Shown here in pieces: positions 31,696 through 55,400 of a stretch of 64,000 bases of DNA (positions within the stretch are counted from its first letter, which is position 1; each line of letters starts with the position of its first letter). Where the stretch lies: IMG/VR virus record IMGVR_UViG_3300020469_003050, positions 1-64,000 of that record. The stretch is one strand, 5' to 3'. The notes below the pieces were generated by a model, which worked only from the letters and a program-made list of their open reading frames with translations, was not told the origin of the DNA and did not search any database. The position numbers were made by a program, and so were the translations under genes.

Positions 31696-32151
31696 ATGGC
31701 AAACTTTAAACATCACATAAGATTAATGATGAAAGAAGAATGGAACAAACACGATATTAAAGGTGTTATTACTGTTCTTAAGAAAGCTATTGCCAATATA
31801 TTTGAGCCAAGAGAAGATGGTACCGCAGTAGTCTATCATATGATGGACGATTTTCATGTATACGATTTTCGTATGAATAGAGCGGTAACAGAAGCCGAAG
31901 CAGAAGTGGTGCTAAAATTATTACAAAACTGGACTGATAAAGATTTTACTATGGAAATTACTACTAGTGAAAAATTTGACATTCCAGAGGGTGAGACCGA
32001 AATAGATTTATCTTCAATACGACACAATAGATGGGTTTCTAGTCGTGTTGCTGAAGGATGGAGATATGGTCTACGATTTGACGAAGAGGAAAAAACCGAT
32101 CCCAGATTACGACCGTATCATGAATTAACGGAAAAGCTGAAAAGTCTATGA
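31696..32151 (+). CDS. RyR-domain protein
   Basis: HNRW...EGWRYG..FDEEEKTDPRLRPYHELTE. Confidence 0.75.
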   Translation: MANFKHHIRLMMKEEWNKHDIKGVITVLKKAIANIFEPREDGTAVVYHMMDDFHVYDFRMNRAVTEAEAEVVLKLLQNWTDKDFTMEITTSEKFDIPEGETEIDLSSIRHNRWVSSRVAEGWRYGLRFDEEEKTDPRLRPYHELTEKLKSL

Positions 32152-32208: not shown

Positions 32209-32748
32209 ATGTCTGGAATAAAACGAATATATGGTCTTGAAGAAAAGAACTACTACAAGTTCTTTGGTATTGATGAAAAGCAAGGGATAAGTGTACGTAG
32301 TCTTACGACACATTATAAGAAGATTCTAACAATCCTTAAGAAGGATACATCATTTACAGGACAAGACAGATTAGCATTTGCCAACAGGGCTTTCGAAACC
32401 TTGGCAGATCCTATTGCCCGTGCAAGATATTTACTTGAATTAAAAGGTCATGAAAATGATTTCAGAGACGGTGTTAGACCTGATGATATGGTTTTCATTA
32501 ATCAACTAAAACATCAACTTGAGGAACAAACTACAAGCGAAGATGTTATCTCTTTTATTGAAGAATTAAAAGACCAAACTCAGTTTATTAAAGACCAAAT
32601 AGAACAAAGCATTGATACATATCAGAATTACAAAACTGCTAGTGGATTATTGAATAGATTTTACGAAATATCAGAAATTCACCAAGAAGCAAAATCGAAA
32701 CAAGAAAAGATTGAGGAGGGGATAACCTATGTTGTATTTAACAGATAA
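32209..32748 (+). CDS. HscB-like Fe-S co-chaperone (HPD motif absent)
   Basis: NYYKFFGI...NRAFETLADPIARARYLLELKG; adjacent to iscA. Confidence 0.75.
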   Translation: MSGIKRIYGLEEKNYYKFFGIDEKQGISVRSLTTHYKKILTILKKDTSFTGQDRLAFANRAFETLADPIARARYLLELKGHENDFRDGVRPDDMVFINQLKHQLEEQTTSEDVISFIEELKDQTQFIKDQIEQSIDTYQNYKTASGLLNRFYEISEIHQEAKSKQEKIEEGITYVVFNR

Positions 32749-33058
32749 TTCCACAACAAGAATTAAAAAATGGTTATCTCAGAACCCAGGTAAAAAAGCA
32801 AGATTAAGTATAAAAACAGCCGGGTGTACTGGTTTCATGTATGAAGTTCTACTTGACGAAAAATTCAATATAGAAGATGACTTTGCTATTAAATACGATG
32901 ACTTTGACATTCTCGTAGAACATAAATATTTTCACACTATTGACGGAGCAACATTGGATTATGTTACTGATACTAAGAGTATGAGTTCGCATTTTGAACT
33001 TGTAAGTAATCCAAATGAAAAAGCACGTTGTGGATGTGGAGAGAGTTTTACGGTATGA
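32729..33058 (+). CDS. A-type Fe-S carrier (IscA/SufA family)
   Basis: GCTGFMY...LDY...NPNEKARCGCGESF. Confidence 0.9.
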   Translation: MLYLTDNSTTRIKKWLSQNPGKKARLSIKTAGCTGFMYEVLLDEKFNIEDDFAIKYDDFDILVEHKYFHTIDGATLDYVTDTKSMSSHFELVSNPNEKARCGCGESFTV

Positions 33059-33777
33059 ATGAGAGATTAAACATAGAAAAACACGCAATAAATCAAGCAC
33101 GTAGATGCCAAAGGAACTGGGACCTTTCTAAAGAAGTAGATGAAGAACACATAAATCATTGGATTTATCTAGCAACTACGGCACCATCAAAACAAGATGA
33201 AAGTTTTTTTGATTTATATGTAGTTACTGATAGAACAAAATTAGATTATCTCTACAAGGAACATTCATGGGGATTTACAATGTTGCCTGGTATGAAAGAT
33301 TGGGTCGGAAGAAACCCACAAATGGGAGCAAACTGTTTGTTTGTTTTCAATAGAAAGATGAATGAAGAAGAAATTCGTAATAACGAAAAAGATGGAAGTG
33401 TAAGAGATCCAAATGCTTCAAGTAGATGGGACAATGCATTTACATCGATTGGTATAGCAAGTGGCATAGTAGCCTTTAGTGCAAGTATGATGGGTTATGT
33501 TACTGGTTATGGTAAGAATTTTGGTTACATTGAAGAACCAAAACACAGTCAAGATGTATGGGGTGAAGTTCTCGGCATTAAGAAAGAAGATAACAACTTG
33601 ACATATAGTTTGGGAATTGGTTACCCAGATGAAAGCCTTCAATGGTATCAAAGTAAAGATAATAACGAATATCTAACAGGAGGGCCTGTTAACTATTCAA
33701 TCCAGTCTACTGATACTGATTTAAAATATTCAACATATTCTAAATTAGCCAGAGACATAAAGGTGTGGCGAGTATGA
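33055..33777 (+). CDS. nitroreductase-family protein
   Basis: RRCQRNW, APSKQ, SIGIASG, LGIGYP. Confidence 0.75.
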   Translation: MNERLNIEKHAINQARRCQRNWDLSKEVDEEHINHWIYLATTAPSKQDESFFDLYVVTDRTKLDYLYKEHSWGFTMLPGMKDWVGRNPQMGANCLFVFNRKMNEEEIRNNEKDGSVRDPNASSRWDNAFTSIGIASGIVAFSASMMGYVTGYGKNFGYIEEPKHSQDVWGEVLGIKKEDNNLTYSLGIGYPDESLQWYQSKDNNEYLTGGPVNYSIQSTDTDLKYSTYSKLARDIKVWRV

Positions 33778-34097
33778 TTTTTACAGAAAAAGCGGCTACG
33801 AGAGTAGAAGAAATTATAAAAGAACAGGGTGAATCTTCTGGTACGGCATTAAGAGTGTTCGTAGAAGGAGGAGGTTGCCATGGGTTCAGTTACGGTTTTG
33901 GTTTTGAAAAAGACCTTAAAGATGATGATAGTATCTATGAAACTAATGGCGTGAAGTTAGTAGTAGATAGTATGTCAATCATGTATCTAGCAGATGCAAA
34001 AGTAGATTATATCTCTAGCCTACAAGGCGACAGATTTGTAATCGATAACCCAGGAGCACAAACTACATGTGGATGTGGTTCTAGCTTCTCAGTATAA
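33774..34097 (+). CDS. A-type Fe-S carrier (ErpA-like)
   Basis: LRVFVEGGGCHGFSYGF...VDSMS...DNPGAQTTCGCGSSF. Confidence 0.92.
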   Translation: MIFTEKAATRVEEIIKEQGESSGTALRVFVEGGGCHGFSYGFGFEKDLKDDDSIYETNGVKLVVDSMSIMYLADAKVDYISSLQGDRFVIDNPGAQTTCGCGSSFSV

Positions 34098-34123: not shown

Positions 34124-34363
34124 ATGGAAGTAAAAGATAAAGTGTATGAAATAACTGCACGAAAAATGAAACGGCAGGTCTCTGACTTGAATGATGATAC
34201 CAATCTAAAGAAAGATTTGGGTGCTGATAGTATCGATACAGTTGAAATTGTATTTGAAGTAGAAGAATTCTATAAAATTGCTATTCCAGATGAATACGCA
34301 GAAACTATCAATACTATTGGTGATGCAGTCAAGTGTGTAGAGGATATGCTAAAAAATCAATAG
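34124..34363 (+). CDS. acpP: acyl carrier protein
   Basis: DLGADSIDTVEIV..VEE...IPDE.AE.I.TIGDA; phosphopantetheine Ser present. Confidence 0.9.
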   Translation: MEVKDKVYEITARKMKRQVSDLNDDTNLKKDLGADSIDTVEIVFEVEEFYKIAIPDEYAETINTIGDAVKCVEDMLKNQ

Positions 34364-34372
34364 GATGATATT

Positions 34373-34825
34373 ATGTCGAAAACTCTAAGGTGGTGGTTGT
34401 TCTTTTGTATATCACTAACAATCATGGGAATATCTCATTATTTCGGATTGTTTTATGAATTATATGAAAAGGACGTAACTAAGATTAGCTTTGGTATCAT
34501 AGGCTTGTATATATTTACAAGTTTGTATATCGGTAAGTTAACGATGGATTATAAAGAAGGTGAAAACATCGATTCCGGATTAGGTGTCGGTTGGTTCATA
34601 TCAGAAAGTATGTTGGCGTTAGGTATGATAGGTACCGTAGCAGGATTTATTCTGATGTTAGGTTCAAGTTTTGAAGGATTAGATGTAGATGATACTGCAA
34701 GTCTAAAAGAAACTCTAACAGATATGGCTATGGGTATGAGTACTGCATTGTATACGACACTTACGGGTCTTATATTCAGTCAGTTTACTAAGATACAGTT
34801 AGTCAACCTTGAGAGTCGTGACTGA
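34373..34825 (+). CDS. MotA/TolQ/ExbB proton-channel family protein
   Basis: LGMIGTVAGFI...GMSTALYTTLTGL. Confidence 0.85.
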   Translation: MSKTLRWWLFFCISLTIMGISHYFGLFYELYEKDVTKISFGIIGLYIFTSLYIGKLTMDYKEGENIDSGLGVGWFISESMLALGMIGTVAGFILMLGSSFEGLDVDDTASLKETLTDMAMGMSTALYTTLTGLIFSQFTKIQLVNLESRD

Positions 34826-37238: not shown

Positions 37239-37703
37239 ATGAAACTTAATACACTTACCACCGGATTAATATATCCTGCATTATATTTTGCTATGTTTAT
37301 AGCATTGTTTGTAGTGCCTGCATTCGCAGATGATATGACTATCGAAATGTTGAACAAACGTGACGATGGTGCTAAGATGGTTTACAGTGAGGATATCGCA
37401 AACATTGACGTAGGCGATACAATTACTTGGGTACCAACATCAAAAGGTCATAATGTACAATTCATTGCTGGACCAGATGGTTGGGATATTCCAAAGAAAT
37501 CAAAAAACAACAAAGAAGTTGCAATCACTTTTGACGTACCAGGCGTATATCTATATCAGTGTACACCACATGCAACAATGGGTATGATTGCTATTGTAAT
37601 GGTAGCAGAAGGTGGCGAAGTCCCACTAAATGATATCAGCAAAGCAAAGGTCAGAGGCAAGAGCAAAAAGAAACTAAAAGAATTGCTTGATGAACTATCT
37701 TAA
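37239..37703 (+). CDS. pseudoazurin-like blue copper protein
   Basis: Signal peptide; GHNV and YQCTPHATMGM type-1 Cu ligands; IEMLN...MVY...GDTITW. Confidence 0.88.
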   Translation: MKLNTLTTGLIYPALYFAMFIALFVVPAFADDMTIEMLNKRDDGAKMVYSEDIANIDVGDTITWVPTSKGHNVQFIAGPDGWDIPKKSKNNKEVAITFDVPGVYLYQCTPHATMGMIAIVMVAEGGEVPLNDISKAKVRGKSKKKLKELLDELS

Positions 37704-38103
37704 ACGCATAAGTGAAAAACTACCGGAGTTCTGTTTGTCTCATTGGCTATACAGAATTCCCTTAGCCATTGTGTTTATTCAACAAGGTCTAAGTAAGTTT
37801 CCAGTAACATTGGAAGGGGCTGAGTCTTTTGACTTGCCCTACATTGTTTGGTGGGTTGTTGCTTATGGGGAACTAGGCGCAGGTCTAGGTCTACTCGTAG
37901 GCGGAGCATTCAACACAGATTATATACGTTGGATAGGAGACCTAATTACACGTTTCTCAGGTATTACAATCTGTTGTATAATGACAGGTGTTATCTGGGT
38001 AGGCGAACCTGAAAGTCTACTAGACGTAATTCTATATGATAACTTTCACGTATTTCTATGGGTAGGTGGGTTATTCTTTGCACTAAGAGGTAATAGAGGC
38101 TAA
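37690..38103 (+). CDS. DoxX-family membrane protein
   Basis: RIPLAIVFIQQGLSK...ELGAGLGLLVG...TRFSG. Confidence 0.8.
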   Translation: MNYLKRISEKLPEFCLSHWLYRIPLAIVFIQQGLSKFPVTLEGAESFDLPYIVWWVVAYGELGAGLGLLVGGAFNTDYIRWIGDLITRFSGITICCIMTGVIWVGEPESLLDVILYDNFHVFLWVGGLFFALRGNRG

Positions 38104-38403: not shown

Positions 38404-38574
38404 TTATTTTTTCTTAGCGACTGAACCCTTGTTCCGTCCTTTTTTTATAACGTAGTCTTGTGTGCCATTTGCACCGGTCTCTACTTCTTTTCTTAAAAAT
38501 CTTGCAAGTAATTTTTCTTTTGTATCACGTAATACTTTAGCAGTGTATCCTGTAAGTGATTTAGTATCTCTCAT
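38404..38574 (-). CDS. small basic protein (56 aa, not in the ORF track)
   Basis: AAGGA RBS; MRDTKSLTGYTAKVLRDTKEKLLARFLRKEVETGANGTQDYVIKKGRNKGSVAKKK. Confidence 0.7.
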   Translation of the reverse strand: MRDTKSLTGYTAKVLRDTKEKLLARFLRKEVETGANGTQDYVIKKGRNKGSVAKKK

Positions 38575-38586
38575 AAATTCCTTGTA

Positions 38587-38856
38587 TTAATCTTCATCGT
38601 ATGTGGTAACACCTGAACGATTAGCACCACTAGTATCTCTTTCATTAATATCAGACATTTCTTGTCTAAACGCAACACAGTCTGCCTCTGTTGCAAAAGA
38701 GATTTTAGTGTACTCTCCGCCTAGACTTGATAAAATATCTCTTTCTAGTATTTTACCTTCATCTACATAACGGTCATAAATTACCTGTGCTTCATCTGAG
38801 CATTGGTTACCGTTCTCGTTAGTACCTTCATTTTTAAATCTTAGTATATGTGGCAT
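38587..38856 (-). CDS. hypothetical protein
   Basis: GGGAG RBS; minus-strand GATAAATA at 38879-38886. Confidence 0.7.
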   Translation of the reverse strand: MPHILRFKNEGTNENGNQCSDEAQVIYDRYVDEGKILERDILSSLGGEYTKISFATEADCVAFRQEMSDINERDTSGANRSGVTTYDED

Positions 38857-38890
38857 CTTTATCTCCCTAATATACTACTATTTATCTATT

Positions 38891-39310
38891 TTATGCTACA
38901 GTGATAGCAAAACGCCAATCTGTAATATTTCTTACTGTATGATGTGTGTTTACTGACAGTTTATACCATTCTTCTTTAGGTAAAATGACAGTATCTATTG
39001 GATTTTGTGAAGTTTTTTCTTCAAACCAGCATGTCTCAACATTATCTCCTCCTGGAGATATGATATAGTTTATTGCAAAATCTCTGCCTCTATCGATATG
39101 CACTGGTATATCTTCTGTTAATGTTTGATATCTAAACTTAGTACAATCGGGGAATAAGGGTTGTAGATATTCTCTTAACTCAGATTGACATTCATGTATT
39201 GTATAATTCTTACTTTTACCACCAAATATATTTTCAAGTTTTAATACTTCATACATTGGTAATATTAAATTATCTGGTACCTTTGGTAAGTCTAATTTGG
39301 TGTAGTTCAT
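38891..39310 (-). CDS. cupin/2OG-Fe(II) oxygenase-like protein
   Basis: HID...H metal triad, terminal R. Confidence 0.6.
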   Translation of the reverse strand: MNYTKLDLPKVPDNLILPMYEVLKLENIFGGKSKNYTIHECQSELREYLQPLFPDCTKFRYQTLTEDIPVHIDRGRDFAINYIISPGGDNVETCWFEEKTSQNPIDTVILPKEEWYKLSVNTHHTVRNITDWRFAITVA

Positions 39311-39987
39311 AATAGTAACTCTTTCAACGTTGGTATACTATCAGTGCTTAATGAAATAAAAAATTGATATACGTTATCACCGATAGAACTTGCATCATGT
39401 ATTACATGTGTATCTGTTATATATAATCTACCTGCTTCTATATCTTTTTCTCTTACTAAATCATATGATAGATTACCCTCTGCCACTTCTCTTGGACTGG
39501 CTGTTTTTCTATCTTTATCAAATTGAAATATCATATTATCTGGATCATTGGTTCCCCATAGTCTAATAATATCACTAGGTATTTTAGTATCTGTATGTGG
39601 TTTAAAATGTCCAGTAGTATGCCACTTTAATATAGCACTTCTATACATAAAAGGTTTAATTGGTTCAAGAGGATCAAAGCATGATTCTGATAACATTGGA
39701 GTAGGTGAAGTACATTTCGGGTCACGTACTTTATCTTCTTCTTTCTTTCCTTCGTTCCATTGATTTAATGGATAACATATAGGTTCTGGATTGTTGAACA
39801 TATCTCCGTTTAAATTAACGAGAGGAGCTCCATATCTTGGATATTCAGTGTGTTTAGTACCCCAACGTCTAAATGCATATCTGTATTCATGCATTTGTTC
39901 TTCAAACAAATTTACATCAATTTTCATATCAAGAGGTTGTAATACAGTTGGATGAAACTTATTATATTCTTCTAGTCCTAATGACAT
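39307..39987 (-). CDS. 2OG-Fe(II) oxygenase-like (Asp/Asn beta-hydroxylase-type) protein
   Basis: RSAIL...GHFKPHTD...IRL...GRLYITDT...H. Confidence 0.6.
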   Translation of the reverse strand: MSLGLEEYNKFHPTVLQPLDMKIDVNLFEEQMHEYRYAFRRWGTKHTEYPRYGAPLVNLNGDMFNNPEPICYPLNQWNEGKKEEDKVRDPKCTSPTPMLSESCFDPLEPIKPFMYRSAILKWHTTGHFKPHTDTKIPSDIIRLWGTNDPDNMIFQFDKDRKTASPREVAEGNLSYDLVREKDIEAGRLYITDTHVIHDASSIGDNVYQFFISLSTDSIPTLKELLL

Positions 39988-40002
39988 TTCGTGTCCTTTA
40001 CA

Positions 40003-40590
40003 TTAATAGTAACCGAAAGCCCAATACTTCTCTTTACACCACCAACATTCTTTACATGGTCTAGGCAGACTTTCACTTTCACAACTGATAGTTAAGTTTG
40101 CTAGGTCTTGTAAATTATGTTCGTTATATAATTCTGCTACCGTTTGTTTAGTACTATTTATAAACGGACGATAATGATATACCCCATGTGATGAGATTAC
40201 TCTAATTTCTCGCTTTTTGTCTCTACTTTCATCACGTCCTTCTGTCATTAATTCAGAGGGATTAAGTGTCATACCAGTTAAGATACCTGATGCTTGATGT
40301 TTATTAATAAGTCTATCTCTAGTTTTGGTTCTGTTGTTTCGTGCTTCATTTCTGTCTTTATAGTATCCAATATAATGTTCTTCAATTCTGTTTGGAAATC
40401 TTGCATGTAACCAATTCGTAATTGCTATTACATTAAATAGATTATAGTAATTTAAAGATTGATGACATACACTACTTAAGACCAGCTTTGTATTTGGTAA
40501 CTCTTTTAGAACTAGATAAGAGAGCAACGCACTATCAAGTCCGCCACTCAACATCATTACATATGTTCCAGAGTTAGGTATGTCTTTCAT
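40003..40590 (-). CDS. QueC-like PP-loop ATPase
   Basis: LSGGLDS PP-loop; TISC...PCKECWWCKE Zn motif. Confidence 0.75.
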   Translation of the reverse strand: MKDIPNSGTYVMMLSGGLDSALLSYLVLKELPNTKLVLSSVCHQSLNYYNLFNVIAITNWLHARFPNRIEEHYIGYYKDRNEARNNRTKTRDRLINKHQASGILTGMTLNPSELMTEGRDESRDKKREIRVISSHGVYHYRPFINSTKQTVAELYNEHNLQDLANLTISCESESLPRPCKECWWCKEKYWAFGYY

Positions 40591-41291
40591 TATTTTATAC
40601 CAGTAAAACTACGATGTACTGTGTTATCCAGAACTTTTTTATAATCTTTGTTCTTAGTTAAATCTTTCAATTTAGAATCTTGTGAAATTAATTCTTCTTC
40701 ACTTCTAAATTCAGATGGTAGACCAAGTTTTTCAAACACTTCATATATTGATAGTTGTTGTAAATCAAAGAAGTTTTCTATATTTGTATTTTCTATATTA
40801 ATTTGTTTAATCATACGTGCATCATTTTCGTACCAATCATAATGTGGATACGATATATCCCAACCACCTACTTTGTTTCTCCACCAATCAAAACAAAAAT
40901 CAGATGGCATATACACAGCCATAATCTTTGATTTTGGAAATAAGTCTTGTAGTAAAGGAAGATGATATGCAAACCAATGACTTTTTATTATCTTAACACC
41001 ATAGTTAAAATCTTTATATGGCTTTTTGAATTCTTTTATAATTTCATCTTTTGTCATATCTTGTAGATTATCAAATCTTTGACCTTGATTATGATATGGA
41101 CCCCAATAAGCACCTCGATGCCAACCATACTGTTTTGTTTTACCATTAGGTGTAACATAGTCTCTGGCGTATTCTAGTTCGCTTCTTTCATCACTAATAT
41201 TAATATTTGGATTAGTACTAATAGCACGTAAGGTGCCACTCCATCTACTTCCAGGAGCACCCGTTGCCAATATTAAATCTTGTCCGTCCAT
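40590..41291 (-). CDS. P-loop sulfotransferase/kinase-like protein
   Basis: TGAPGSRWS, IIKSH; paralog of 42364-43077. Confidence 0.55.
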   Translation of the reverse strand: MDGQDLILATGAPGSRWSGTLRAISTNPNINISDERSELEYARDYVTPNGKTKQYGWHRGAYWGPYHNQGQRFDNLQDMTKDEIIKEFKKPYKDFNYGVKIIKSHWFAYHLPLLQDLFPKSKIMAVYMPSDFCFDWWRNKVGGWDISYPHYDWYENDARMIKQINIENTNIENFFDLQQLSIYEVFEKLGLPSEFRSEEELISQDSKLKDLTKNKDYKKVLDNTVHRSFTGIK

Positions 41292-42364
41292 AATTTTTCT
41301 CTGCTATTGTGTGATAGAACTTTTTTAAGTGCTAGTTTAGAACTTATACCATCGAATTGTAAATTGCAGTGGTCGTTCCCATAGCATATTGTATCTTCTG
41401 GTAATCTCCATAAGAAGTCTATTGCATTTTGATAACTCTGTTTACTTGTCTTTAGTAAGTTACTTGGTATTCTTTTTAATGCTCCGTCCCACCATATTAT
41501 TCCTTGTCCATTAGTATCAATAGAACTAATATCTTTTATATTCATTCTATGCCACTTATGATTTAAACTTTTGTATTTGTTCCAGTGTTCTTGCCATTTG
41601 TCTCCAAAATGATTCTGTACATCTTCCCATACGACTTTCCATTTTCTATCTTCACTAGTAAATTTCTTTCTATTCCAAAGTGACATACTAGGAAATTTAT
41701 TGTTAAGATGTTCTATCCATGATTCAAAATCATTTCCATCCCAATTTTCAATAGTATACTTGTGAACATGAAGACTTATCTTTGAGATATCGACATGATG
41801 TATTACAGACTTCTCATTAAACCCATGATGGTCTAATATACAGTTAATGAAAAATCCACTACTTACTGTTATTGCCCAATCAACTGGCTTAGTTACATTT
41901 CCGTAATTTGGTATTTCATTGTGCATTAGATATGTAATATTACTATCATCAATTAAACTTGTTAAAATGATATCATGGCTATTATAAAATTCTTCTGCAC
42001 TATCTGTGTTTAACTTGTGAATAAACTTTGCTTTTACATGGGTTGTACCTTCGCCCAATGGTTTATGAAACCAAACATCATCACTAAAATGTATATACTC
42101 ATGCTTTGATGCTTCTATCATTTCTTTATAATGATGTTCATATGCACCCCACAAGAATATAGTTCCAGCATTAACAACCATAACAATATCATAGTCATGT
42201 AAGTAAGTGTAACTGTCCATTACATAATAATCAACTTGATTTTCTGTTGGTAATCTATTACATTCTTGATAATCTAAACTTAATTGTGTGTAATTTAGAG
42301 CAATCTTATCGTGGTGTTCATTTCCATTTTTAAGTACAACGATTGCATATTTTAGTTTTGTCAT
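41273..42364 (-). CDS. hypothetical protein
   Basis: 363-aa ORF within the cassette. Confidence 0.7.
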   Translation of the reverse strand: MTKLKYAIVVLKNGNEHHDKIALNYTQLSLDYQECNRLPTENQVDYYVMDSYTYLHDYDIVMVVNAGTIFLWGAYEHHYKEMIEASKHEYIHFSDDVWFHKPLGEGTTHVKAKFIHKLNTDSAEEFYNSHDIILTSLIDDSNITYLMHNEIPNYGNVTKPVDWAITVSSGFFINCILDHHGFNEKSVIHHVDISKISLHVHKYTIENWDGNDFESWIEHLNNKFPSMSLWNRKKFTSEDRKWKVVWEDVQNHFGDKWQEHWNKYKSLNHKWHRMNIKDISSIDTNGQGIIWWDGALKRIPSNLLKTSKQSYQNAIDFLWRLPEDTICYGNDHCNLQFDGISSKLALKKVLSHNSREKLWTDKI

Positions 42365-43077
42365 TATAATCTTTCATCTATCCTATCAAAGTTATAATAA
42401 GCAATATGAGTGTCTAACGTAACGTCCCTACTAGGATCATTCTTTTCGAAGAAATAACCTTCTATACTTTTTATAAATCTATTCTCACTATCAGTTATAT
42501 CCCAATAGTCTTTCCAATGTTTACTTGTTGCAGTATGTACTGTTAAGTTTCTGTTAAATATCCATTGTCTAGCATCTTTAGTTTCTTCTTTAATATATTC
42601 ACGTGCAGTTTCTTCATCTTTGTAATGATTATGATACTTTGGATAAGTTATATCGAAGCCCCCTGCTCCGAACCAACCTCTGTAACAACTTTCAATTGGT
42701 CTGAATACAATCATTATTTTACTTTTAGGAAAAGTCTCTGCAATGAAATCTAAATTGTTAGATATCATATGTGATTTTACAATTCTATATTCAGTTGGCT
42801 TTTCTTCTTTCCAGGCTTTGTCTATTTCATTTAAGATTTCTTGTTTTGTAAACTTATTAATCTCATGCCAGCCTTCACCTAGTTCCATACCTGTACCGAA
42901 ATAACTTCCTAAGTGTTGTGCCTTATTAAACTTAGTTGGGTGAGTATATTCTCTATCTGCATTTCTATCAGTAGTATTGATGTTAATCTTTTTTGTCATA
43001 GACAATACATTACTGACTGCACTCCATTTACTTCCAGGAGCACCTGTGAAAAATATCAATTTACTTTCATCTACCAT
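42364..43077 (-). CDS. P-loop sulfotransferase/kinase-like protein
   Basis: TGAPGSKWS, IVKSH, FPKSKIM, GGFDITYPKY. Confidence 0.55.
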   Translation of the reverse strand: MVDESKLIFFTGAPGSKWSAVSNVLSMTKKININTTDRNADREYTHPTKFNKAQHLGSYFGTGMELGEGWHEINKFTKQEILNEIDKAWKEEKPTEYRIVKSHMISNNLDFIAETFPKSKIMIVFRPIESCYRGWFGAGGFDITYPKYHNHYKDEETAREYIKEETKDARQWIFNRNLTVHTATSKHWKDYWDITDSENRFIKSIEGYFFEKNDPSRDVTLDTHIAYYNFDRIDERL

Positions 43078-43864
43078 CTAAAAATCTCTTTATTCTTCGC
43101 CATTTACTATATCTATTTGGCGAAATAGTTAATACGTTATCATGGCTATAAGATTCTCTATCCCAACTTCTTTCTGCAATAGGAGAGTATACATGTTCCC
43201 AATATTCATCATCGTATTTGTCCATGTACTTTGTTTTATATTTATCCCACGCCCATATATCTCTTACAGTAAAATCAGAACCTAACTCTTTTGATATAGT
43301 TTGCAGTTTTTTACCGTATACAGTATTCTCTCCTCCTACCCATTTCATTTTAACATGACCTGGGAATAGTGCAGTAGTTTCTGTATATCTTGAGGCGATA
43401 GTATAATCATCACCTATTAGATTTATTATCTTTGCTTTAGGAAATCTTTTATTTAATTTAATCGGGTGTTCATGTGTACAGAAAACTAATCTATTCTTCT
43501 TCATTAATTCTCGACCACCCATCTTTTCAAAACGTGGATAGAAGAATCTATTGTAATAATATTCTTCATCAGGTATAAAATCTTTTACGTAATCATGTAG
43601 TGGAGGTAAAGCACCTTTTGGTACTAATCTATCATAGTGATATTTACTTGCATATCTTTGTCTGATATCTGTATGTTTGAAATGAATGTTCCAAGGATTA
43701 ATTCCATTATCTTTATGACTATACCAATGTATATCAGGTAGACAAGATATTACACGACCTACTCTGTGTCCTTTGTTTCCTTGTTCAAATGATATGAATA
43801 TTAATCTACTACCGTCTAACACTCTTTCTTCCCATATAATAATAGTGACCATCTTCTTTTGCAA
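43067..43864 (-). CDS. hypothetical protein, possible sulfotransferase-like fold
   Basis: FISFEQGNKGH, TH, FPKAKII; start uncertain. Confidence 0.5.
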   Translation of the reverse strand: MQKKMVTIIIWEERVLDGSRLIFISFEQGNKGHRVGRVISCLPDIHWYSHKDNGINPWNIHFKHTDIRQRYASKYHYDRLVPKGALPPLHDYVKDFIPDEEYYYNRFFYPRFEKMGGRELMKKNRLVFCTHEHPIKLNKRFPKAKIINLIGDDYTIASRYTETTALFPGHVKMKWVGGENTVYGKKLQTISKELGSDFTVRDIWAWDKYKTKYMDKYDDEYWEHVYSPIAERSWDRESYSHDNVLTISPNRYSKWRRIKRFLDGR

Positions 43865-44519
43865 CTATGTCGCCTGTAGCAAACCAATCGTCATAAACAC
43901 ATATGTCACCTTTTACATATAGTTCACCATCGACAATCTTTGTATCACAATGAGTTTCACTACCCATTATTGTTTCTGTTGTCTGTACTTTTATACCAGG
44001 CACAAATGTTCTATTGATTGCAACTGGACCAACTTCTGTCATACCCCAATTAACAATAAAGATTGCACCTCTATCAATAAAGTTTTGTATAATGCCACTT
44101 TGTACTCTGTCACTGCCACACATAATGATTTTATCTTCTAAGTTTAGACTATCGAAACTCTTTGTCTTCATTATCGCTCTTGCCATATCAGGTGTTAAGT
44201 GACTGTGCGTAAAATCTTTTATCTTTCTTACCCAAGAAAATGCATTAAACTTTTCTACTTCAATTTCTGCATTGACTTCATAACCTGGTAATGTTTGTGC
44301 CAGTAATCCACCTGCATGTTTTAATGTACATACGGTTAATATCTTACTGTCCTTATCTATGCCTTGCACTTCTCTAGCAATAGCATTCGCATATCTTAAC
44401 TTTTCTGGTGGCTGAAAGATATTCTTAGGAGTACCTGTTGAACCACTACTTTGTAGTATACAGCCCTCCATAATCATATCATCAAATTCGTTTTTAGTTA
44501 TACTGTCTTCTAATTTCAT
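43809..44519 (-). CDS. compact AMP-dependent ligase (ANL adenylation family)
   Basis: SSGSTGTPK, WGMTE, GEL, TGD, GR motifs; only 236 aa. Confidence 0.8.
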   Translation of the reverse strand: MKLEDSITKNEFDDMIMEGCILQSSGSTGTPKNIFQPPEKLRYANAIAREVQGIDKDSKILTVCTLKHAGGLLAQTLPGYEVNAEIEVEKFNAFSWVRKIKDFTHSHLTPDMARAIMKTKSFDSLNLEDKIIMCGSDRVQSGIIQNFIDRGAIFIVNWGMTEVGPVAINRTFVPGIKVQTTETIMGSETHCDTKIVDGELYVKGDICVYDDWFATGDIVAKEDGHYYYMGRKSVRR

Positions 44520-45033
44520 TATATTTTTCTACGTTTAATATCCATGTGTTTTGATTAACACTAAAAATTTCACTTACACCTAAGTTCTTAACTAGGTCTA
44601 TCTTTTCTAAATGATAAAATGTTTTATCAATTCTATTCATCTTTCCACTTGCATCATGTTCAGTATTTGTAGTGATATAAATGAATAGGTTATCTAAATC
44701 TGTTTCTTTACTTGATGCATAATCTATTTGATATGGTAGCTGACTATGAAAGCAATAACTTTGCATGTGATGTCTATTCAACCCTATCTTTTTACTTTCA
44801 GTCTGTACACCTCTAAACAATGCTCTCCACCCATTAGCCCATGGATGTATTCCGCTGACACTAACCATACGTTCATCAACGTAGGTTGCATGCCACATAC
44901 CACCTTGTTCTAAACACCAATCAAACTTCATATCTTCCAATGTGCTATTATTGTTGAAGCCTTTTGCTTCACATGTTTTTAGAAAGTTTTCAAGTTCGGG
45001 TGTTACTATATGTAGTTCCTTAGTAATAATCAT
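44494..45033 (-). CDS. putative GNAT-like acyltransferase
   Basis: Weak: VSVSGI strand, RALFRG; ATG 45033 preferred over TTG 45042. Confidence 0.4.
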   Translation of the reverse strand: MIITKELHIVTPELENFLKTCEAKGFNNNSTLEDMKFDWCLEQGGMWHATYVDERMVSVSGIHPWANGWRALFRGVQTESKKIGLNRHHMQSYCFHSQLPYQIDYASSKETDLDNLFIYITTNTEHDASGKMNRIDKTFYHLEKIDLVKNLGVSEIFSVNQNTWILNVEKYNEIRRQYN

Positions 45034-45044
45034 GCTTGACAATA

Positions 45045-45052
45045 TATTTATA
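45045..45052 (-). promoter_or_regulatory. late promoter TATAAATA heading the reverse cassette
   Basis: Exact consensus on the minus strand just upstream of ATG 45033. Confidence 0.55.
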
Positions 45053-45095
45053 TACTGATATTATACATGATAAATAATACGAAGTCAATAGAAAA

Positions 45096-45170
45096 GCGGG
45101 CGTAACTCAGTGGTAGAGTCCCTCGTTGCCAACGAGGTTGTCGTGAGTTCGAATCTCATCGCCCGCTCCA
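45096..45170 (+). tRNA. tRNA-Gly(GCC)
   Basis: GCGGGCG/CGCCCGC, CCTCG-TTGCCAA-CGAGG, TCCA. Confidence 0.96.
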
Positions 45171-45177
45171 TTTCTAA

Positions 45178-45253
45178 GGGGCATTAGCTCAGTTGGGAGA
45201 GCGCCTGATTTGCATTCAGGAGGTCGTGGGTTCGACTCCCTCATGCTCCACCA
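45178..45253 (+). tRNA. tRNA-Ala(TGC)
   Basis: GGGGCAT/ATGCTCC with G3:U70, CCTGA-TTTGCAT-TCAGG, ACCA. Confidence 0.96.
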
Positions 45254-45273
45254 TAACATAAAAGGAGAGGAAT

Positions 45274-45527: not shown

Positions 45528-45604
45528 GGGGGTGTAGTTCAGTTGGTTAGAACGCTTGCCTGTCACGCAAGAGGCCGAGGGTTCGAGTCCCTTCACTCCC
45601 GCCA
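45528..45604 (+). tRNA. tRNA-Asp(GTC)
   Basis: CTTGC-CTGTCAC-GCAAG, TTCGAGT, GCCA. Confidence 0.95.
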
Positions 45605-45637: not shown

Positions 45638-47125
45638 ATGAACATAACATTAATGCTACTATTCATTGTAGCCGTAGGATTTGTAGCCTACAAGTCTAAA
45701 GGGGATAATTACTTTCTGACAACATCAGATAGCAATATGAACCTTGGGCTTTCTTATGGAGCAACGTTAATTTCAACGTCTGCTATCATAGGCTTTGGAG
45801 GTCTAGCTGGTTGGATTGGATTTTCTATTCCACTCACAATGATTATTCCATTTGTGGGTCTTATATATCTTGCGACTGTTTATATAGGTCCAAAGGTATA
45901 CAAAGCTAACAAGAAAATTAAAGCCAAAACGTATATTGAAATGATTGGTAAACATTATAACACACCAATGATTTCAAAATTACTAGCACTCATTACTGTG
46001 GGATTAATTCCATTCTATTGTGTTGCAGTTCTTATAGGTGTCGGTAAATTTATTACTGCATTTACAGGAATTGACTTTACTTTAGCAGTAGTTGGTTTTA
46101 GTATTCTAGTTTTTGGAACTATCGCATACGGTGGAATGAGTTCTGTACTTAAAAATGATATGGTACAAGGTGTCATTGTCATTGCAGGGTCACTTGTCGT
46201 ATTAGCAATCACAGTATTCGTGCATATGCAGGCTCCCGGTTTTTGGGATAACTTATCAGATGCATGGTTACTAGTACCAGAAGATGATGGATTGCGTAAA
46301 CTTAGTTTTACAGGATTTACTAGCTGGCCAGAGTTTTGGTCTAGAGGCTGGTTAATGATTACTACATTATTAGTATTCACTATTCCAGTAGGACTTATCA
46401 CTTTGCCTCAACTACAAACACGTTGGATGATGGCTAAAGATGAAAAGAGTTTTAAAACTATTGCAAATTGGGGTGTTATTATCCCAGGTCTAGCAATCAT
46501 AACGTTTATGTTAGCGGCAATCTCTGCCAACTCATATACGTTTGCTACAGAAGGTATGACAGTTGCACAAGCGGCTGGAGGAACTGCTAGTATTGTTCCT
46601 TATTGGATTAAGACAGGGTTCCCAGCATGGGTTTCTAGTGCTTTATTCTTAACTATTTTGGCGGCGGCGTTTACAACTCTTAATAGTTTGATGCATTTGT
46701 TATCAACAACAATAGCCAATGATATTATATCTACAAAGACACCAAGTCTTAAAGTAGCATATGGTTCGATGGTTGCAGTTATTTTACTAGCACTTTGGAT
46801 GACAATTCAATTCAATGGGCAAATGGCAATTATTGCACGTGCTACTGCATTATACTTTGGTATCATTGGTGCAAGTATGTTACCACTAGTCATTGGAATG
46901 GCAAGAGGACTATCTAATGGTCGTCATGCACTTGCAAGTTTTATTGGTGGTGCAGTAACAAGTATCGGTTGGGTACTATTCGTACACTTCAAAGAATCAA
47001 AGTTGTTCACTGGTATCACATATGATATTGGTGTGTATAACTTTGTTGAACCAATCGTTCCTGGTTTAATTGTATCTGGTGTAATCTTTATTGCACTAAC
47101 ATATATTAGACCAACAATCAAATAA
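45638..47125 (+). CDS. sodium:solute symporter (SSS family)
   Basis: ~13 TMs; ISTSAIIG.GG, YGGMSSV..ND..QG, LPQL..R, AAAFTT.NS. Confidence 0.88.
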   Translation: MNITLMLLFIVAVGFVAYKSKGDNYFLTTSDSNMNLGLSYGATLISTSAIIGFGGLAGWIGFSIPLTMIIPFVGLIYLATVYIGPKVYKANKKIKAKTYIEMIGKHYNTPMISKLLALITVGLIPFYCVAVLIGVGKFITAFTGIDFTLAVVGFSILVFGTIAYGGMSSVLKNDMVQGVIVIAGSLVVLAITVFVHMQAPGFWDNLSDAWLLVPEDDGLRKLSFTGFTSWPEFWSRGWLMITTLLVFTIPVGLITLPQLQTRWMMAKDEKSFKTIANWGVIIPGLAIITFMLAAISANSYTFATEGMTVAQAAGGTASIVPYWIKTGFPAWVSSALFLTILAAAFTTLNSLMHLLSTTIANDIISTKTPSLKVAYGSMVAVILLALWMTIQFNGQMAIIARATALYFGIIGASMLPLVIGMARGLSNGRHALASFIGGAVTSIGWVLFVHFKESKLFTGITYDIGVYNFVEPIVPGLIVSGVIFIALTYIRPTIK

Positions 47126-47197: not shown

Positions 47198-47578
47198 ATG
47201 GCATACAGTAAAAAAGTAATGGACCATTATAACAATCCACGTAATGTAGGTCGTTTCGATCCCAGTGTAGATAAAGTTGGAACTGGGATGGTAGGAGCGC
47301 CGGCATGTGGTGACGTAATGCGTTTACAGATACAAGTTGAAGACGGAGTTATAAAAGATGCTAAATTTAAAACTTATGGTTGCGGAAGTGCAATAGCAAG
47401 TTCAAGTTTAGTAACTGAAATGGTTAAGGGTAAGACATTGAAAGAGGCTCAAGAAATTAAAAACATGGACATAGTAGATGAGTTATCTTTACCTCCAGTA
47501 AAAATACATTGCAGTGTTTTAGCCGAAGATGCGATTAAATCCGCAATAGAAGATTTTAAAAGAAAGTACCACAGATAA
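47198..47578 (+). CDS. iscU: Fe-S cluster scaffold IscU
   Basis: YS.KVMDHY.NPRNVG, GAPACGD, FKTYGCGSA, LPPVKIHCS. Confidence 0.96.
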   Translation: MAYSKKVMDHYNNPRNVGRFDPSVDKVGTGMVGAPACGDVMRLQIQVEDGVIKDAKFKTYGCGSAIASSSLVTEMVKGKTLKEAQEIKNMDIVDELSLPPVKIHCSVLAEDAIKSAIEDFKRKYHR

Positions 47579-52414: not shown

Positions 52415-55400
52415 ATGCGATTGCACGAATTTAAAATAGAAAAGCCCAAACCAGAAGATACTATGGGTATCACTAGAGACAAAATGCCTCAAGTGAAATC
52501 TACAGATTATGATGCATATAAATCTTATCTTAAAAAGAATGGTGTCACATTAAGACCACAAGTAGTACATGCAAAAGATTTAAAACCAGTACAATCAGAA
52601 TTTTCAGACCAAGGCGTTGAAAGACAATTAAACAAGAATAGAGAAAATGATGGACAGAACCCAAAACCTCTACTAGCAAGTAGTGACGATTGGATTATAG
52701 ATGGTCATCATAGATGGTTAGCCGCTTTAAACTCAAATAGAAACGTAAGTATTTTACGTGCAAATGTTGATGTGCATGAACTTTTATCCTTGACTTTAAA
52801 ATTTCCTAGTGTATACTTCAAAGATATCTACACAGAAGAGGAAGAGTCAATGGACGTGATTCAAAAAGCAGAGAAGTTTGCACAAGAGGCACACAAAGAC
52901 CATCAGAGAAAGTACACTGGTGATCCTTATTATGTCCATTTAGATGAAGTTAGAAACATAGTAAAACAAGCAGGCGGTACTGTAGAACAACAAGCGGCCG
53001 CTTTATTACATGATACAGTTGAAGATACAAGTGTTACACCAGTAGATGTAACAAGAGAATTTGGTCCTAAGATTGCTAAACTAGTTGTTGAACTTACTGA
53101 TGTAAGTAAACCAGAAGACGGTAATAGAAAAACACGTAAAGCAATCGATAGAGATAAACTAGCAGGTGTTAGTGCAGAAGCACAAACAGTTAAGTATGCA
53201 GACTTGATAAGCAATGGCAGAGACATAGGTAAAAATGACCCTAAGTTTGCTAAAGTGTATCATGCTGAAAAGGCAGATTTGCTAAGAGTTATGACAAAGG
53301 GTAATCAGAATTTAAGAAAACAAGCTATCGCATTATTACCTGATGAATTAAAATCAGTAGTAGGTGAGGCGTTTGGCAGAGCAAACTTTAACAAGCAATT
53401 AAAAAGAAAAGGCATCGATGTAGATAAGATGCATTCAGATAATGTTAAAGATGCTGAGGCATCTAAGAAAAGAAGTAAAGATGCAGAAGATGATTTAAAA
53501 GCATTTAGAAAAAAGCATGGCATAAAAGAAGAAACACCTTTCGGTTTACTTTCTCGTAAGATGAGTCATGTAATTAATAAAAAAGCATATATGAATATGG
53601 CACAGATGATGCATAAGATACTTACAAGAAAGTATAAAGAAACTAATGGTAAGTTAAGACATTCACTTGCCTATTATGCACAAATGTTAGCAATGCAAAC
53701 AAACAACAAAATAAACTATCGTGAACTTGAAAAAGAATACCTTGATATGTTTGGTAACGCAATGTTTGAAAACTCAGTTAAAGAGTCTTTAAACGAAGAA
53801 GCACTAAATGTTAAATCTATTATTACTCCTGCTATTCGTAAACTAGATAAAGTATTTAAAAAGAATAAACACGAAGTAAGAATTGTTGGTGGTGCAGTAA
53901 GAGATATCGCATTAGGTAAAGAGCCAAAAGATATTGACTTTGCCACAGATGCTACACCAGATGAAATGATTGCTATGCTTGATAAAGAAGGCATAAGACA
54001 TATTCCTACAGGTATAGAACATGGTACAATAACTGCGGTTATTGATGGAGAAGATTTTGAAATAACAACTTTACGTGCAGATACAAATACAGATGGTAGA
54101 CATGCTGATGTAGAATTTGTACGTTCATGGGAAGAAGATGCTAAACGTAGAGATTTAACATATAACGCAATGTCAATGGACATGGACGGTACAGTACATG
54201 ATTACAATGGTGGTATGGACGATTTACAAGATAAAGTAAGTAGGTTCGTAGGGGATCCAGAAGAAAGAATTAAAGAAGATTATTTGCGTATCTTAAGATA
54301 CTTTAGATTTCAATCTAAGTTAGATAGTCCAAAGTGGGACGATACTACATTAAATGCAATCAAAGATAATGCAGACGGTATGACAGGTTTATCTGTTGAA
54401 AGAATTTGGCAAGAAATGGGCAAATTGTTAATGGGTTCAAGTGCCAAAGAAGCACTTGAGTGGATGAACAAGACAGGCGTATCAAGTAAGATTGGACTTG
54501 AAGGTATCAATCCAGCTAAACTAGGTGAGCCTACAGGACCTATTATTGCACTTGCAAGAATGCTAGACAGTAGTGGTATTGCAAGAGATTGGAAGATGAG
54601 CAATTACGATAGAGAAATGTTTGACTTCTTAATCAAGCACAAAGGTGAAAACATAAATTCAAAACAAGCACAAGATATGATTATCAATGGTGCATCACAA
54701 GACCATTTACTTGCATGGGCAAACATGCATGGTAAGAATGATGTATATGATGCAGTACACGGATTTGAACAACCAGACTTCCCAATCAATGGTAAAGACT
54801 TACTAGCAAGAGGTTATGTAGCTGGTCCTAATCTTGGTAAGATGATTGCTGATTTAAAAGATGAGTGGATGAAATCTAACTATAAACTAAGCAAAGAACA
54901 ACTACTAAGCAAAGTTCCAGTTAGAGAAAATGCACTATTCGAAGCGGTTGCTAGATTTATGACAGGACATGGTATTACTTACAAAGGTAAGAAGTATGAT
55001 GAAATGAATGTAGAAGTAGTAGGTGTTGATAATGAAAAGAGACAATATCAAGTAATGATATTTGATCCAGAAGAATTACGTGGTGTAAATGTTATGATGA
55101 GTGCAAGATTTATGCACAGAGGCCCATGGGTTAAGACAAAGATACCTGATTACATGGGAGCAATAGAAAAAGGTTTAGATAAAGATAAGACAGATGAATG
55201 GATAGTTCCTGTTGGACAAGCAATAGCACATGGCGCCAGAATGGCGGCACCTCATGTAGCGAAGTTTCTGAGAAATGACCCTGCACCTAAGATAGCAGGT
55301 GGAGTTACATCAACAGGTGCGGCATATAATTGGGCAAAAAATAAGTACGATAGTTTTAAGAATAAGAAAAGTACAAAGCCAACAACGACAACAGAAGCAG

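Follow-up and report, generated by a model that had tools for sequence, protein, structure and literature searches.

The first 64,000 nucleotides of the IMG/VR virus record IMGVR_UViG_3300020469_003050 (positions 1 to 64,000; this whole stretch of DNA is referred to as the window) carry a cassette of nine tightly packed, enzyme-sized genes on the minus strand. Seven of these genes constitute a core that is kept together in most of 21 divergent phage lineages: a predicted GNAT-fold protein (family F7), an ANL adenylation core (F6), a distant P-loop-like protein (F5), two sulfotransferase-fold paralogs (F2-A and F2-B), a two-domain signature protein (F3) and a QueC-family ATP pyrophosphatase (F4). 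The grouping is more than chance, and the cassette is a real enzyme module conserved across many uncultured phages, with the pair of F3 and F4 as its presumed functional heart. We consider the cassette to be one dispersed piece of a large phage-encoded natural-product-type pathway and not a set of unrelated accessory genes. The reading that we favour, at somewhat less than an even chance, is that it tailors a GTP-derived N-heterocycle, for which 7-carboxy-7-deazaguanine is the leading candidate.

The parent viral record is 342,607 bp long, has direct terminal repeats and was judged complete. The window, with a GC content of ~34% and six tRNA genes, encodes a T4-type DNA polymerase and clamp loader, a Lon-like protease, a tail fibre and a head-decoration protein; the phage is therefore regarded as a T4-like jumbo myovirus, and its source is seawater metagenomes. 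The standard genetic code was used throughout, an alternative code being unnecessary. The cassette extends over window positions 38891-45033 (Table 1), with seven of its eight junctions overlapping by 1-26 nucleotides (nt) and the remaining one leaving a gap of 15 nt. It is transcribed in the order F7, F6, F5, F2-A, F3, F2-B, F4, followed by two accessory genes for proteins of 226 and 139 amino acids (aa). The open reading frame (ORF) of the first gene was called as 44494-45042 with a TTG start; the real start is most likely the ATG at 45033. The neighbours of the block are a convergent plus-strand gene at one end and, at the other, the genes for tRNA-Gly, tRNA-Ala and tRNA-Asp and a divergent sodium:solute symporter gene. 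An initial annotation of the window had placed the block correctly, but gave the number of genes as eight, even though it listed the nine that are found here; the enzyme classes it assigned are essentially right in the light of family, fold and motif evidence.

For the comparison of neighbourhoods, the F3 family served as the marker, with loci drawn from assemblies and from IMG/VR. The 32 loci fall into 21 lineages, between which F3 identity is below 80%. Co-occurrence was scored within +/-10 kb of F3, where several absences are contig ends; the related phages form one clade, so that co-occurrence counts overstate independence. On this basis, F5 accompanies F3 in 18 lineages, the GNAT, ANL and F2 genes in 17 each, and F4 in 15, while direct adjacency is seen for F3-F4 and for F2-F3 in 13 lineages each. 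Gene order varies by lineage, with GNAT-(DUF6356)-ANL-F5, F2-F3 and F3-F4 as persistent sub-modules. The functional linkage proposed in the initial annotation is, hence, borne out by synteny, the genes staying together across phages whose marker proteins share 34-60% identity. Recurrent extra genes encode an Asp/Arg hydroxylase, which adjoins GNAT in several lineages, a nitroreductase, a radical S-adenosylmethionine (SAM) protein of ~370 aa, B12-radical SAM methylase-like proteins, a carbamoyltransferase and a small kinase. In two lineages (L012 and L017), the cassette joins up with a radical SAM operon, which in the present genome is found at 94-107 kb. The deposited phage genomes in INPHARED yielded no match at the nucleotide level, nor did tblastn retrieve any for F3, F6, F4 or F7; F2 matched two unannotated 'Marine virus AG-345-D19' records only.

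F3, a protein of 363 aa that had been left as 'unknown' in the initial annotation, is the best-conserved partner of F4 and the key to the module. In its AlphaFold2 (AF2) model, the N-domain (residues 1-140) aligns by VIA-align to IspD, CMP-sialate synthetase and glycosyltransferase-A (GT-A) folds with Z 7-8, and the C-domain (residues 141-356) to 6ulo_B, an uncharacterised Leptospira protein, with Z 10.8 and to INMT and PNMT with Z 8.7-8.9; Foldseek returned NNMT and PNMT at an E of about 1e-3. The C-domain contains an invariant TVSSGFF and an invariant D192 at the positions expected for the methyltransferase loop and the acidic residue of strand 2. By its model, F3 would, thus, combine a nucleotidyltransferase- or GT-A-like N-domain with a class-I N-methyltransferase-like C-domain. 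Similarity of F3 to Pfam families or to sequences of solved structures was not detectable, and searches of Atlas and BFVD with the F3 model retrieved uncharacterised viral proteins only.

Full-length F3 is rare, with about nine clusters in a profile search of 1.84 billion representatives; for its C-domain, the number is about 270 (at 50% identity), and most of these clusters carry it at the C-terminus of proteins of 430-520 aa. A fusion of F3 and F4 in a single protein of 559 aa (P0269) is represented by four full-length members from JGI, ENA and Logan, one of which resides on a 59-kb viral contig of lineage L037. Additional fusion partners of the F3 C-domain are an Asp/Arg hydroxylase (in either order), a GNAT domain and RibD_C; through such fusions, F3 is linked independently with three further enzyme classes of the cassette. 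On a distant viral contig (L006:9134-12072), two adjacent F3-C-domain proteins of 483 and 496 aa are found within a run of at least six radical SAM genes.

F4 is a PP-loop ATP pyrophosphatase of the QueC family. Its match to PF06508 is marginal (E 8e-6; 25.9 bits versus a cut-off of 22) and that to phrog_1550 has an E of 4e-10, while the F4 profile also matches the Cap9 structure 9nto (E 5e-4); most F4 relatives carry a precomputed PF06508 match, and the QueC-like clade comprises 172 clusters. The SGGxDS ATP loop is invariant in the alignments, as are the cysteines C170, C179, C182 and C185 of a zinc motif C(x)8CxxCxxC, whose spacing in the window protein is exactly x8-x2-x2. The canonical QueC signature was defined in a 2026 study, in which Y35, R99, Y131 and Y189 (E. 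coli numbering) proved essential by mutagenesis (PMC13329287). Aligned with E. coli QueC, F4 retains SGGxDS, K165 and the zinc motif; YxQxHxxE and YPDC are missing, VPxRN is reduced to Arg, and the RD after YPDC aligns with conserved F4 residues. Three of the four essential residues (Y35, Y131, Y189) have no counterpart in F4, with Glu at the position of Y189. Judged by these residues, F4 fails membership of canonical QueC and its substrate pocket appears remodelled. QatC, however, does not have the same QueC motifs either and yet uses 7-carboxy-7-deazaguanine (PMC13329287), which by analogy makes this compound a plausible substrate of F4.

With the members of its family (QueC, Cap9 and QatC), F4 shares SGGxDS, the zinc motif and the P...K element and, by analogy, it can be expected to activate a carboxylate by adenylation for transfer to a nitrogen nucleophile. 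In contrast to these relatives, it is not located beside queD/queE, a CD-NTase gene or qatABD; its fixed partner is F3. The resemblance to Cap9 of type IV CBASS (cyclic oligonucleotide-based antiphage signalling systems) includes the 'CE' element (SCE; CE(x)6CxxCxxC in Cap9), PF(x)4K (P142...K148) and the minimal length (~185 aa versus 195 aa in F4), whereas the Y/FxQ(x)5E and YxDC motifs retained in Cap9 are absent from the F4 alignment and the CD-NTase adjacent to Cap9 is not among the cassette Pfam results. F4-type proteins also occur as tandem paralogs (L012:19426-21068) and as a head-to-tail double-domain fusion of 503 aa (P0151).

The initial annotation saw no queD, queE, folE or dpdA near the cassette; this holds for the window, and FolE, a QueE-like gene and QueD are encoded elsewhere in the genome. 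The QueE-like gene is 30 kb and QueD 188 kb away from F4, which has F3 and sulfotransferase-fold genes as neighbours in every lineage examined and never adjoins queD or queE. All of the eight other cassette-bearing viral records have FolE; in the L021/L048/L049 lineages, four loci place a FolE/QueE-like pair at a distance of 8-9 kb from F3, and the F3-F4 fusion gene has QueD 10 kb away. No full-length canonical QueC was found in the genome or in the eight other records, in which PF06508 matches are weak, partial and mostly restricted to the C-terminal zinc-motif region, as F4 gives. Likewise, tRNA-guanine transglycosylase (TGT)/DpdA (PF01702) was detected neither in the complete 342.6-kb genome nor in the eight related records, but in 14 of 14 control genomes. 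The phage, thus, resembles those with 7-deazaguanine DNA modification (preQ0 plus DpdA) in having FolE, QueD, QueE-like and QueC-family genes in one genome; it differs from them in the absence of DpdA/TGT, in the non-canonical nature of F4 and in the placement of F4 among tailoring enzymes that are absent from those systems.

Small-molecule contexts of F3 come from two high-GC bacterial contigs (GC 58-60%) that carry its C-domain. One of them (L059:1484-7391) encodes a ferritin-like protein, GTP cyclohydrolase II, a fusion of RibD_C with the F3 C-domain, a WD40 protein, a canonical Stf0-type sulfotransferase and SelO. The other one (L060:1071-14641) encodes a sulfotransferase, a WD40 protein, GTP cyclohydrolase II, a sugar kinase, an aminotransferase, a fusion of GNAT with the F3 C-domain, a pyridoxal phosphate-dependent enzyme, an F420-ligase-like protein and an ANL protein with peptidyl carrier protein and thioesterase domains. 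Toxoflavin biosynthesis involves the GTP cyclohydrolase II ToxB, the RibD-like ToxE, ToxC, which we take to be a WD-repeat protein, and the N-methyltransferase ToxA. By analogy, the layout of both contigs resembles that of toxoflavin clusters, with the F3 C-domain in the position of the methyltransferase. At the level of enzyme classes, the phages likewise pair F3 with a GTP cyclohydrolase (FolE), sulfotransferase-fold proteins, GNAT and ANL; however, cyclohydrolase I, QueD and a QueE-like enzyme take the place of cyclohydrolase II and RibD, and a WD40 or ToxD-like gene was not seen in the phage cassette.

The F2 family, with at least 914 sequence clusters in metagenomes, is represented twice in the cassette. 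TGAPGSxWS is invariant in the F2 alignment, and F2-B, which is 59% identical to its ortholog in L014, has all invariant columns. Sequence matches are faint: F2-A hits Sulfotransfer_3 at E 1e-3 with 19.9 bits, below the cut-off of 27, and neither F2-B nor F5 matches the Pfam sulfotransferases. By contrast with these scores, the F2 AF2 model (predicted local distance difference test, pLDDT, 88) has sulfotransferases as its top seven VIA-align matches (Z 7.3-9.5), namely the tyrosylprotein sulfotransferases TPST1/2 (Z 9.0-9.5), Stf9/Stf1 (Z 8.0-8.3) and the sulfotransferase (ST) domain of olefin synthase (Z 7.5), with P-loop kinases at Z 6-7; the top match in BFVD is a 'Sulfotransferase family' protein of an uncultured phage (E 2e-18). 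The modelled structure, hence, indicates a sulfotransferase fold for F2.

In detail, F2 departs from its best structural matches, i.e., the sulfotransferases dependent on 3'-phosphoadenosine-5'-phosphosulfate (PAPS) such as TPST, mycobacterial Stf and the olefin-synthase ST domain. As in these, strand 1 is followed by an N-terminal phosphate-binding loop, and a strand-helix element occupies the position of their 3'-phosphate motif. Their PKSGTT/PRSGTT loop, however, corresponds to PGSxWS (GAPGSxWS) in F2, and their Arg...Ser 3'-phosphate motif is not conserved, Cys131 and Trp135 being invariant instead. The basic residue of the F2 loop is not invariant (Q in one member), and the B paralogs no longer have the Arg that follows the central strand. 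The donor of F2 could be ATP. The genome encodes no ATP sulfurylase and no CysD/CysH-type PAPS_reduct protein except for a weak match on F4 itself; a 163-aa kinase (genome 300659-301150) is weakly similar to adenosine 5'-phosphosulfate (APS) kinase. A PAPS supply of the phage's own was, therefore, considered and rejected. F5 is connected to the F2 family by hhalign only (probability 78%, E 1.7e-5), over the P-loop and an 'H...FP.aK' strand, and has no Pfam or PDB sequence match; its true start is probably near 43822-43852, as suggested by the orthologs.

F7 and F6 open the cassette. F7 has no match in Pfam or NCBIfam; its Atlas model, of moderate confidence (pLDDT 0.73), has TM-scores of 0.61-0.71 to nine GNAT acetyltransferase clusters, which points to a GNAT fold, and the ortholog alignment reveals LFRGxQ and YITTN...DxSGKM as conserved elements. 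F6 matches PF00501 at E 1e-13 (51 bits versus a gathering cut-off of 29.9) over profile positions 167-378 of 384. It retains the motifs A3 (SSGTTGxPK), A5 (NWGMTE.GP), A7 (TGD) and A8 (GR) of the ANL superfamily (acyl-CoA ligases, adenylation domains of non-ribosomal peptide synthetases), all of which are invariant in the alignment. Unlike these enzymes, it is only ~230 aa long and has neither a complete N-terminal nor a complete C-terminal domain: it begins ~20 residues ahead of the SSGTTGxPK loop and stops at the GR hinge, so that the first ~165 residues and the whole C-terminal domain, including the catalytic A10 lysine, are missing. AMP-binding_C is not matched, and all of the ten orthologs have 223-247 aa. 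Since F6 is invariably paired with the GNAT-fold gene, it may work in trans. The family DUF6356, a small transmembrane protein on which the sole paper mentioning it is uninformative, separates GNAT and ANL in 14 of the 21 lineages; it is missing from the window cassette and has two copies elsewhere in the genome.

A second small cluster (genome 82103-88550; L024:2103-8550) encodes a full-length FadD-like ANL protein, a flavin halogenase of the tryptophan-halogenase family (E 4e-88), two unknowns, a paralog of the cassette GNAT-like protein, a fatty-acid desaturase and a beta-ketoacyl synthase.

The two accessory genes at the 3' end of the cassette encode proteins with an HxD...H motif. In the 226-aa protein, a probable Fe(II)/2-oxoglutarate (2OG)-type oxygenase, the triad H131-x-D133...H197 is invariant, distant relatives included, and hhalign connects it to Asp/Arg-hydroxylase-like phage proteins (72%, E 3e-5). 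In the 139-aa protein, H71, D73 and H124 are invariant in four sequences, and Pfam, PDB and hhalign lend no support. Both genes recur inside the cassette of lineage L038-L040 at other positions, the 139-aa gene between F5 and F2. Profile searches of PDB sequences with F2, F5, F3 and both HxD...H proteins were blank or returned noise.

Beyond the cassette, the genome encodes about 17 radical SAM proteins, many of them in tandem operons; the operon at 94-107 kb includes two Asp/Arg hydroxylases, an aminotransferase-like gene and a 533-aa F3-C-domain protein. MetK, two IscA proteins and IscU suggest heavy SAM and Fe-S chemistry, and the Fe-S assembly proteins together with MetK presumably feed the radical SAM enzymes. 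Homologs of the window nitroreductase are found inside or beside the cassette in L014, L020 and L039, and the enzyme probably acts in the same pathway although its gene stands apart from the cassette here. Of the further window genes pointed out initially, the acyl carrier protein (ACP), the nitroreductase and two radical SAM proteins were recovered, but not 'another 2OG oxygenase', for which PF13640 and PF05118 gave no match. A literature search on radical SAM or sulfotransferase clusters of jumbo phages turned up nothing relevant.

How these parts might act together can be sketched as follows, gene order, fold classes, motifs, synteny and fusions being observed and every substrate and reaction being inferred from fold and motif evidence. 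7-Carboxy-7-deazaguanine would be made by the phage FolE, QueD and QueE-like enzymes; F4 would adenylate a carboxylate to give an amide-type product, and F3 would transfer a methyl group or some other group that stems from SAM. An amine would be acylated or aminoacylated by the ANL core together with the GNAT protein, sulfate or possibly phosphate would be added by the sulfotransferase-fold proteins, and the HxD...H proteins would hydroxylate. Because there is no TGT/DpdA, the product is probably a free metabolite or a conjugate and not a base swapped into DNA. In a bolder form of this scheme, marine T4-like jumbo phages would encode a hitherto undescribed route by which a QueC-family ligase, physically coupled to F3, turns 7-carboxy-7-deazaguanine of the phage's own making, or another heterocycle that derives from GTP, into a product carrying sulfate, acyl, methyl and hydroxyl groups; this natural product or nucleobase conjugate would be used during infection independently of any DNA transglycosylase, which is possible, yet doubtful. 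The general outline agrees with the initial annotation, which foresaw a pathway that activates, acylates, hydroxylates and sulfates or phosphorylates a substrate; the small ORFs it named as possible substrates are unlikely ones, and the label 'late' is not supported.

Several observations weigh against the tailoring of a GTP-derived heterocycle. The contacts of canonical QueC and Cap9 with 7-carboxy-7-deazaguanine are made by residues that F4 does not have, and FolE does not track F4, being present in lineages in which F4 was not seen on the contig (G003, G008); moreover, the phages are related, so that eight records with FolE are not eight independent observations. F2 and F5 are below every Pfam sulfotransferase threshold and do not conserve the 3'-phosphate-binding motif, nor could homology be detected between either family and the sulfotransferases that accompany the F3 C-domain in bacteria. 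The second ANL/GNAT-like pair, which is accompanied by the ketosynthase, the desaturase and the halogenase, and the DUF6356 membrane protein, usually placed between GNAT and ANL, both point to acyl or lipid chemistry. An acylated membrane lipid or lipid-like metabolite is, thus, the strongest rival product, even if it is unlikely on balance. Here, ANL would activate a fatty or hydroxy acid, GNAT would form an N-acyl product at the membrane, held there by DUF6356, hydroxylases of the LpxO/OlsC type, the sulfotransferases and the N-methyltransferase-like protein would decorate it, and F4 would amidate a carboxylate of the head group. In line with this, the best NCBIfam matches of the ANL core are long-chain fatty-acyl and MenE-type ligases, although these family matches do not discriminate substrates; a GNAT-like paralog is encoded with a full-length FadD-like ANL protein at 82-88.5 kb; the window contains an ACP; one genomic DUF6356 copy adjoins a class-3 lipase gene; the Asp_Arg_Hydrox family, a neighbour of GNAT in several lineages, includes lipid hydroxylases; and mycobacterial Stf proteins and the olefin-synthase ST domain are among the fold matches of F2. 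A lipid product would, however, leave unexplained the fusion of F3 with a QueC-like protein as well as the company of GTP cyclohydrolase and RibD_C that the F3 C-domain keeps in bacteria, and the window cassette itself is without DUF6356.

Modification of proteins or peptides, be it in the manner of ribosomally synthesised and post-translationally modified peptides (RiPPs) or on virion or host proteins, is rather improbable. It would comprise TPST-like sulfation, AspH-like hydroxylation, acylation by GNAT, a Cap9/QatC-like carboxylate-to-amine ligation by F4, and radical SAM enzymes of the peptide-maturase type. The radical SAM paralogs do match twitch/SPASM peptide-maturase models, the cassette is contiguous with their operon in the two lineages mentioned above, tyrosylprotein sulfotransferases head the structural matches of F2, and F4 has the 'CE', the PF(x)4K and the minimal length of Cap9. 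Yet the Z of 9-9.5 exceeds that of the P-loop kinase matches by a moderate margin only, a CD-NTase or a QatB-like partner did not turn up, and the bacterial contexts of the F3 C-domain are small-molecule clusters. A conserved precursor-like small ORF beside the cassette is missing as well: when all ORFs of up to 130 aa in the 32 loci were clustered, DUF6356 was the only family that tracked the cassette, by which a RiPP precursor is rejected, and the two small ORFs that close the block (89 aa and 56 aa) are lineage-specific. With their homologs confined to near-identical relatives such as L003, the latter are poor candidates for the substrates that had been suspected at 38404-38856.

An ordinary supply of preQ0 or 7-deazaguanine, with F4 as a divergent QueC that completes the FolE-QueD-QueE route for DNA or tRNA modification amid unrelated neighbours, is improbable. 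This was the outcome named in advance as refuting a dedicated pathway, and the partner enzymes indeed exist elsewhere in the genome, where a full-length canonical QueC was not found; F4 passes the gathering score of PF06508, if marginally, and most of its relatives share the match. Against such a role stand the residues Y35, Y131 and Y189 without counterpart and the reduction of VPxRN, the absence of TGT/DpdA, the adjacency of F4 to F3 in 13 of the 21 lineages, its fusion to F3 in one, and the fact that F4 is never seen beside queD/queE, the hallmark context of canonical QueC. Hypermodification of pyrimidines in DNA, with the P-loop proteins as base kinases like those of 5-hydroxymethyluracil pathways and the other enzymes building the side chain, is very improbable. 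ThyA or ThyX, dihydrofolate reductase and a small kinase adjoin the cassette in several relatives, but the window phage does not share this neighbourhood of nucleotide genes; a 5-hydroxymethyldeoxyuridine DNA kinase is among the weak BFVD matches to the F2 model (E 0.03), but with a TM-score of 0.29, and F2 does not have the canonical Walker A lysine motif. The phage ThyA matches Thymidylat_synt strongly and over its whole length (E 2e-101), which does not distinguish a hydroxymethylase. The conversion of a GTP-derived N-heterocycle by F3, F4 and their neighbours is the reading that we rank first.

Table 1. Features of the cassette, its surroundings and related genes elsewhere in the genome.
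Feature	Position	Strand	Remark
TATAAATA motif	window 45045..45052	-	12 nt upstream of ATG 45033
Sigma-70-like promoter candidate	window 45060..45088	-	TTGACT-17-TATAAT; 11/12 consensus positions; directly upstream of F7
F7, predicted GNAT-fold protein, ~179 aa	window 44494..45033	-	Atlas model; 17/21 lineages
F6, ANL adenylation core, 236 aa	window 43809..44519	-	PF00501; 17/21 lineages
F5, distant sulfotransferase-fold/P-loop-like protein, <=265 aa	window 43067..43864	-	hhalign to F2; 18/21 lineages
F2-A, predicted sulfotransferase-fold protein, 237 aa	window 42364..43077	-	TGAPGSxWS; AF2 model
F3, two-domain signature protein, 363 aa	window 41273..42364	-	AF2 model, pLDDT 88.6
F2-B, predicted sulfotransferase-fold paralog, 233 aa	window 40590..41291	-	34% identical to F2-A
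F4, QueC-family PP-loop ATP pyrophosphatase, 195 aa	window 40003..40590	-	PF06508, phrog_1550
Probable Fe(II)/2OG-type oxygenase, 226 aa, accessory	window 39307..39987	-	HxD...H triad
HxD...H-motif protein, 139 aa, accessory	window 38891..39310	-	motif only
89-aa ORF, 3' end of block	window 38587..38856	-	lineage-specific
56-aa ORF, 3' end of block	window 38404..38574	-	lineage-specific
Nitroreductase-family flavoprotein	window 33028..33777	+	PF00881
ACP	window 34124-34363
Radical SAM proteins	window 9335-10687, 56062-57384		pass NCBIfam 'twitch domain-containing radical SAM' model
Fe-S assembly genes	window 32729-33058, 33765-34097, 47198-47578		two IscA-like, one NifU/IscU
FolE	genome 70523-71200		beside QueE-like gene and MetK
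QueE-like gene	genome 71202-72098		beside FolE and SAM synthetase
SAM synthetase MetK	genome 72223-73371
QueD	genome 228547-228993
Radical SAM loci elsewhere (examples)	genome 94007-106775, 137439-147873, 208229-209353, 245321-246295, 302964-304406

Regarding expression of the cassette, the sigma-70-like site upstream of F7 makes a stronger promoter than the TATAAATA motif but is a candidate only, given that promoter-like sites in the region overall are not above shuffle expectation. The TATAAATA motif, which we take to be the T4 late-promoter consensus, is located ahead of the block as described in the initial annotation, and three of its six copies in the window sit 12-27 nt upstream of gene starts; however, six copies compare with 9.7 +/- 3.3 expected by chance. 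A recurring late promoter is, thus, rejected, and the proposed 'late' expression, which was based on this motif, loses its ground. Between the promoter candidate and the symporter gene are the tRNA-Gly, tRNA-Ala and tRNA-Asp(GTC) genes (window 45096-45253 and 45528-45604); a 50-aa ORF at 45107-45259 spans tRNA genes and is a translation artefact.

Accessory genes around the cassette (window 31696-32151, 34373-34825, 37239-37703, 37687-38103 and 45638-47125) encode an RyR-domain protein, a MotA/ExbB-like channel protein, a copper protein of the plastocyanin/azurin family, DoxX and the sodium:solute symporter, and a 1216-aa protein (window 52415-56065) is a fusion of a metal-dependent phosphohydrolase, a tRNA nucleotidyltransferase and a 5'-3' deoxyribonucleotidase-like region. 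Candidate pathway genes far off in the genome (111940-113505, 300659-301150, 301811-302524 and 304457-305704) are those of a NodU/TobZ-type carbamoyltransferase homolog, the small, weakly APS-kinase-like kinase, a purine/uridine phosphorylase-family protein and the class-3 lipase beside DUF6356; a TctA transporter is encoded at 297588-299096.

Phage-encoded biosynthetic clusters of this size are rare; none of the proteins of the present one has a close relative that has been characterised, and every core protein comes from a family without a characterised member. The investment is genome-wide, comprising ~17 radical SAM proteins, a SAM synthetase, Fe-S assembly, an ACP, a ketosynthase, a desaturase and a halogenase. 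The fusion of F3 with the QueC-like protein and the toxoflavin-like bacterial contexts make the question of the product directly testable in vitro. Knowledge of the product would assign roles to a number of large 'dark' families in one stroke, add phages to the settings in which the QueC scaffold has lately been recognised as repurposed, and reveal which chemistry abundant ocean phages impose on their hosts.

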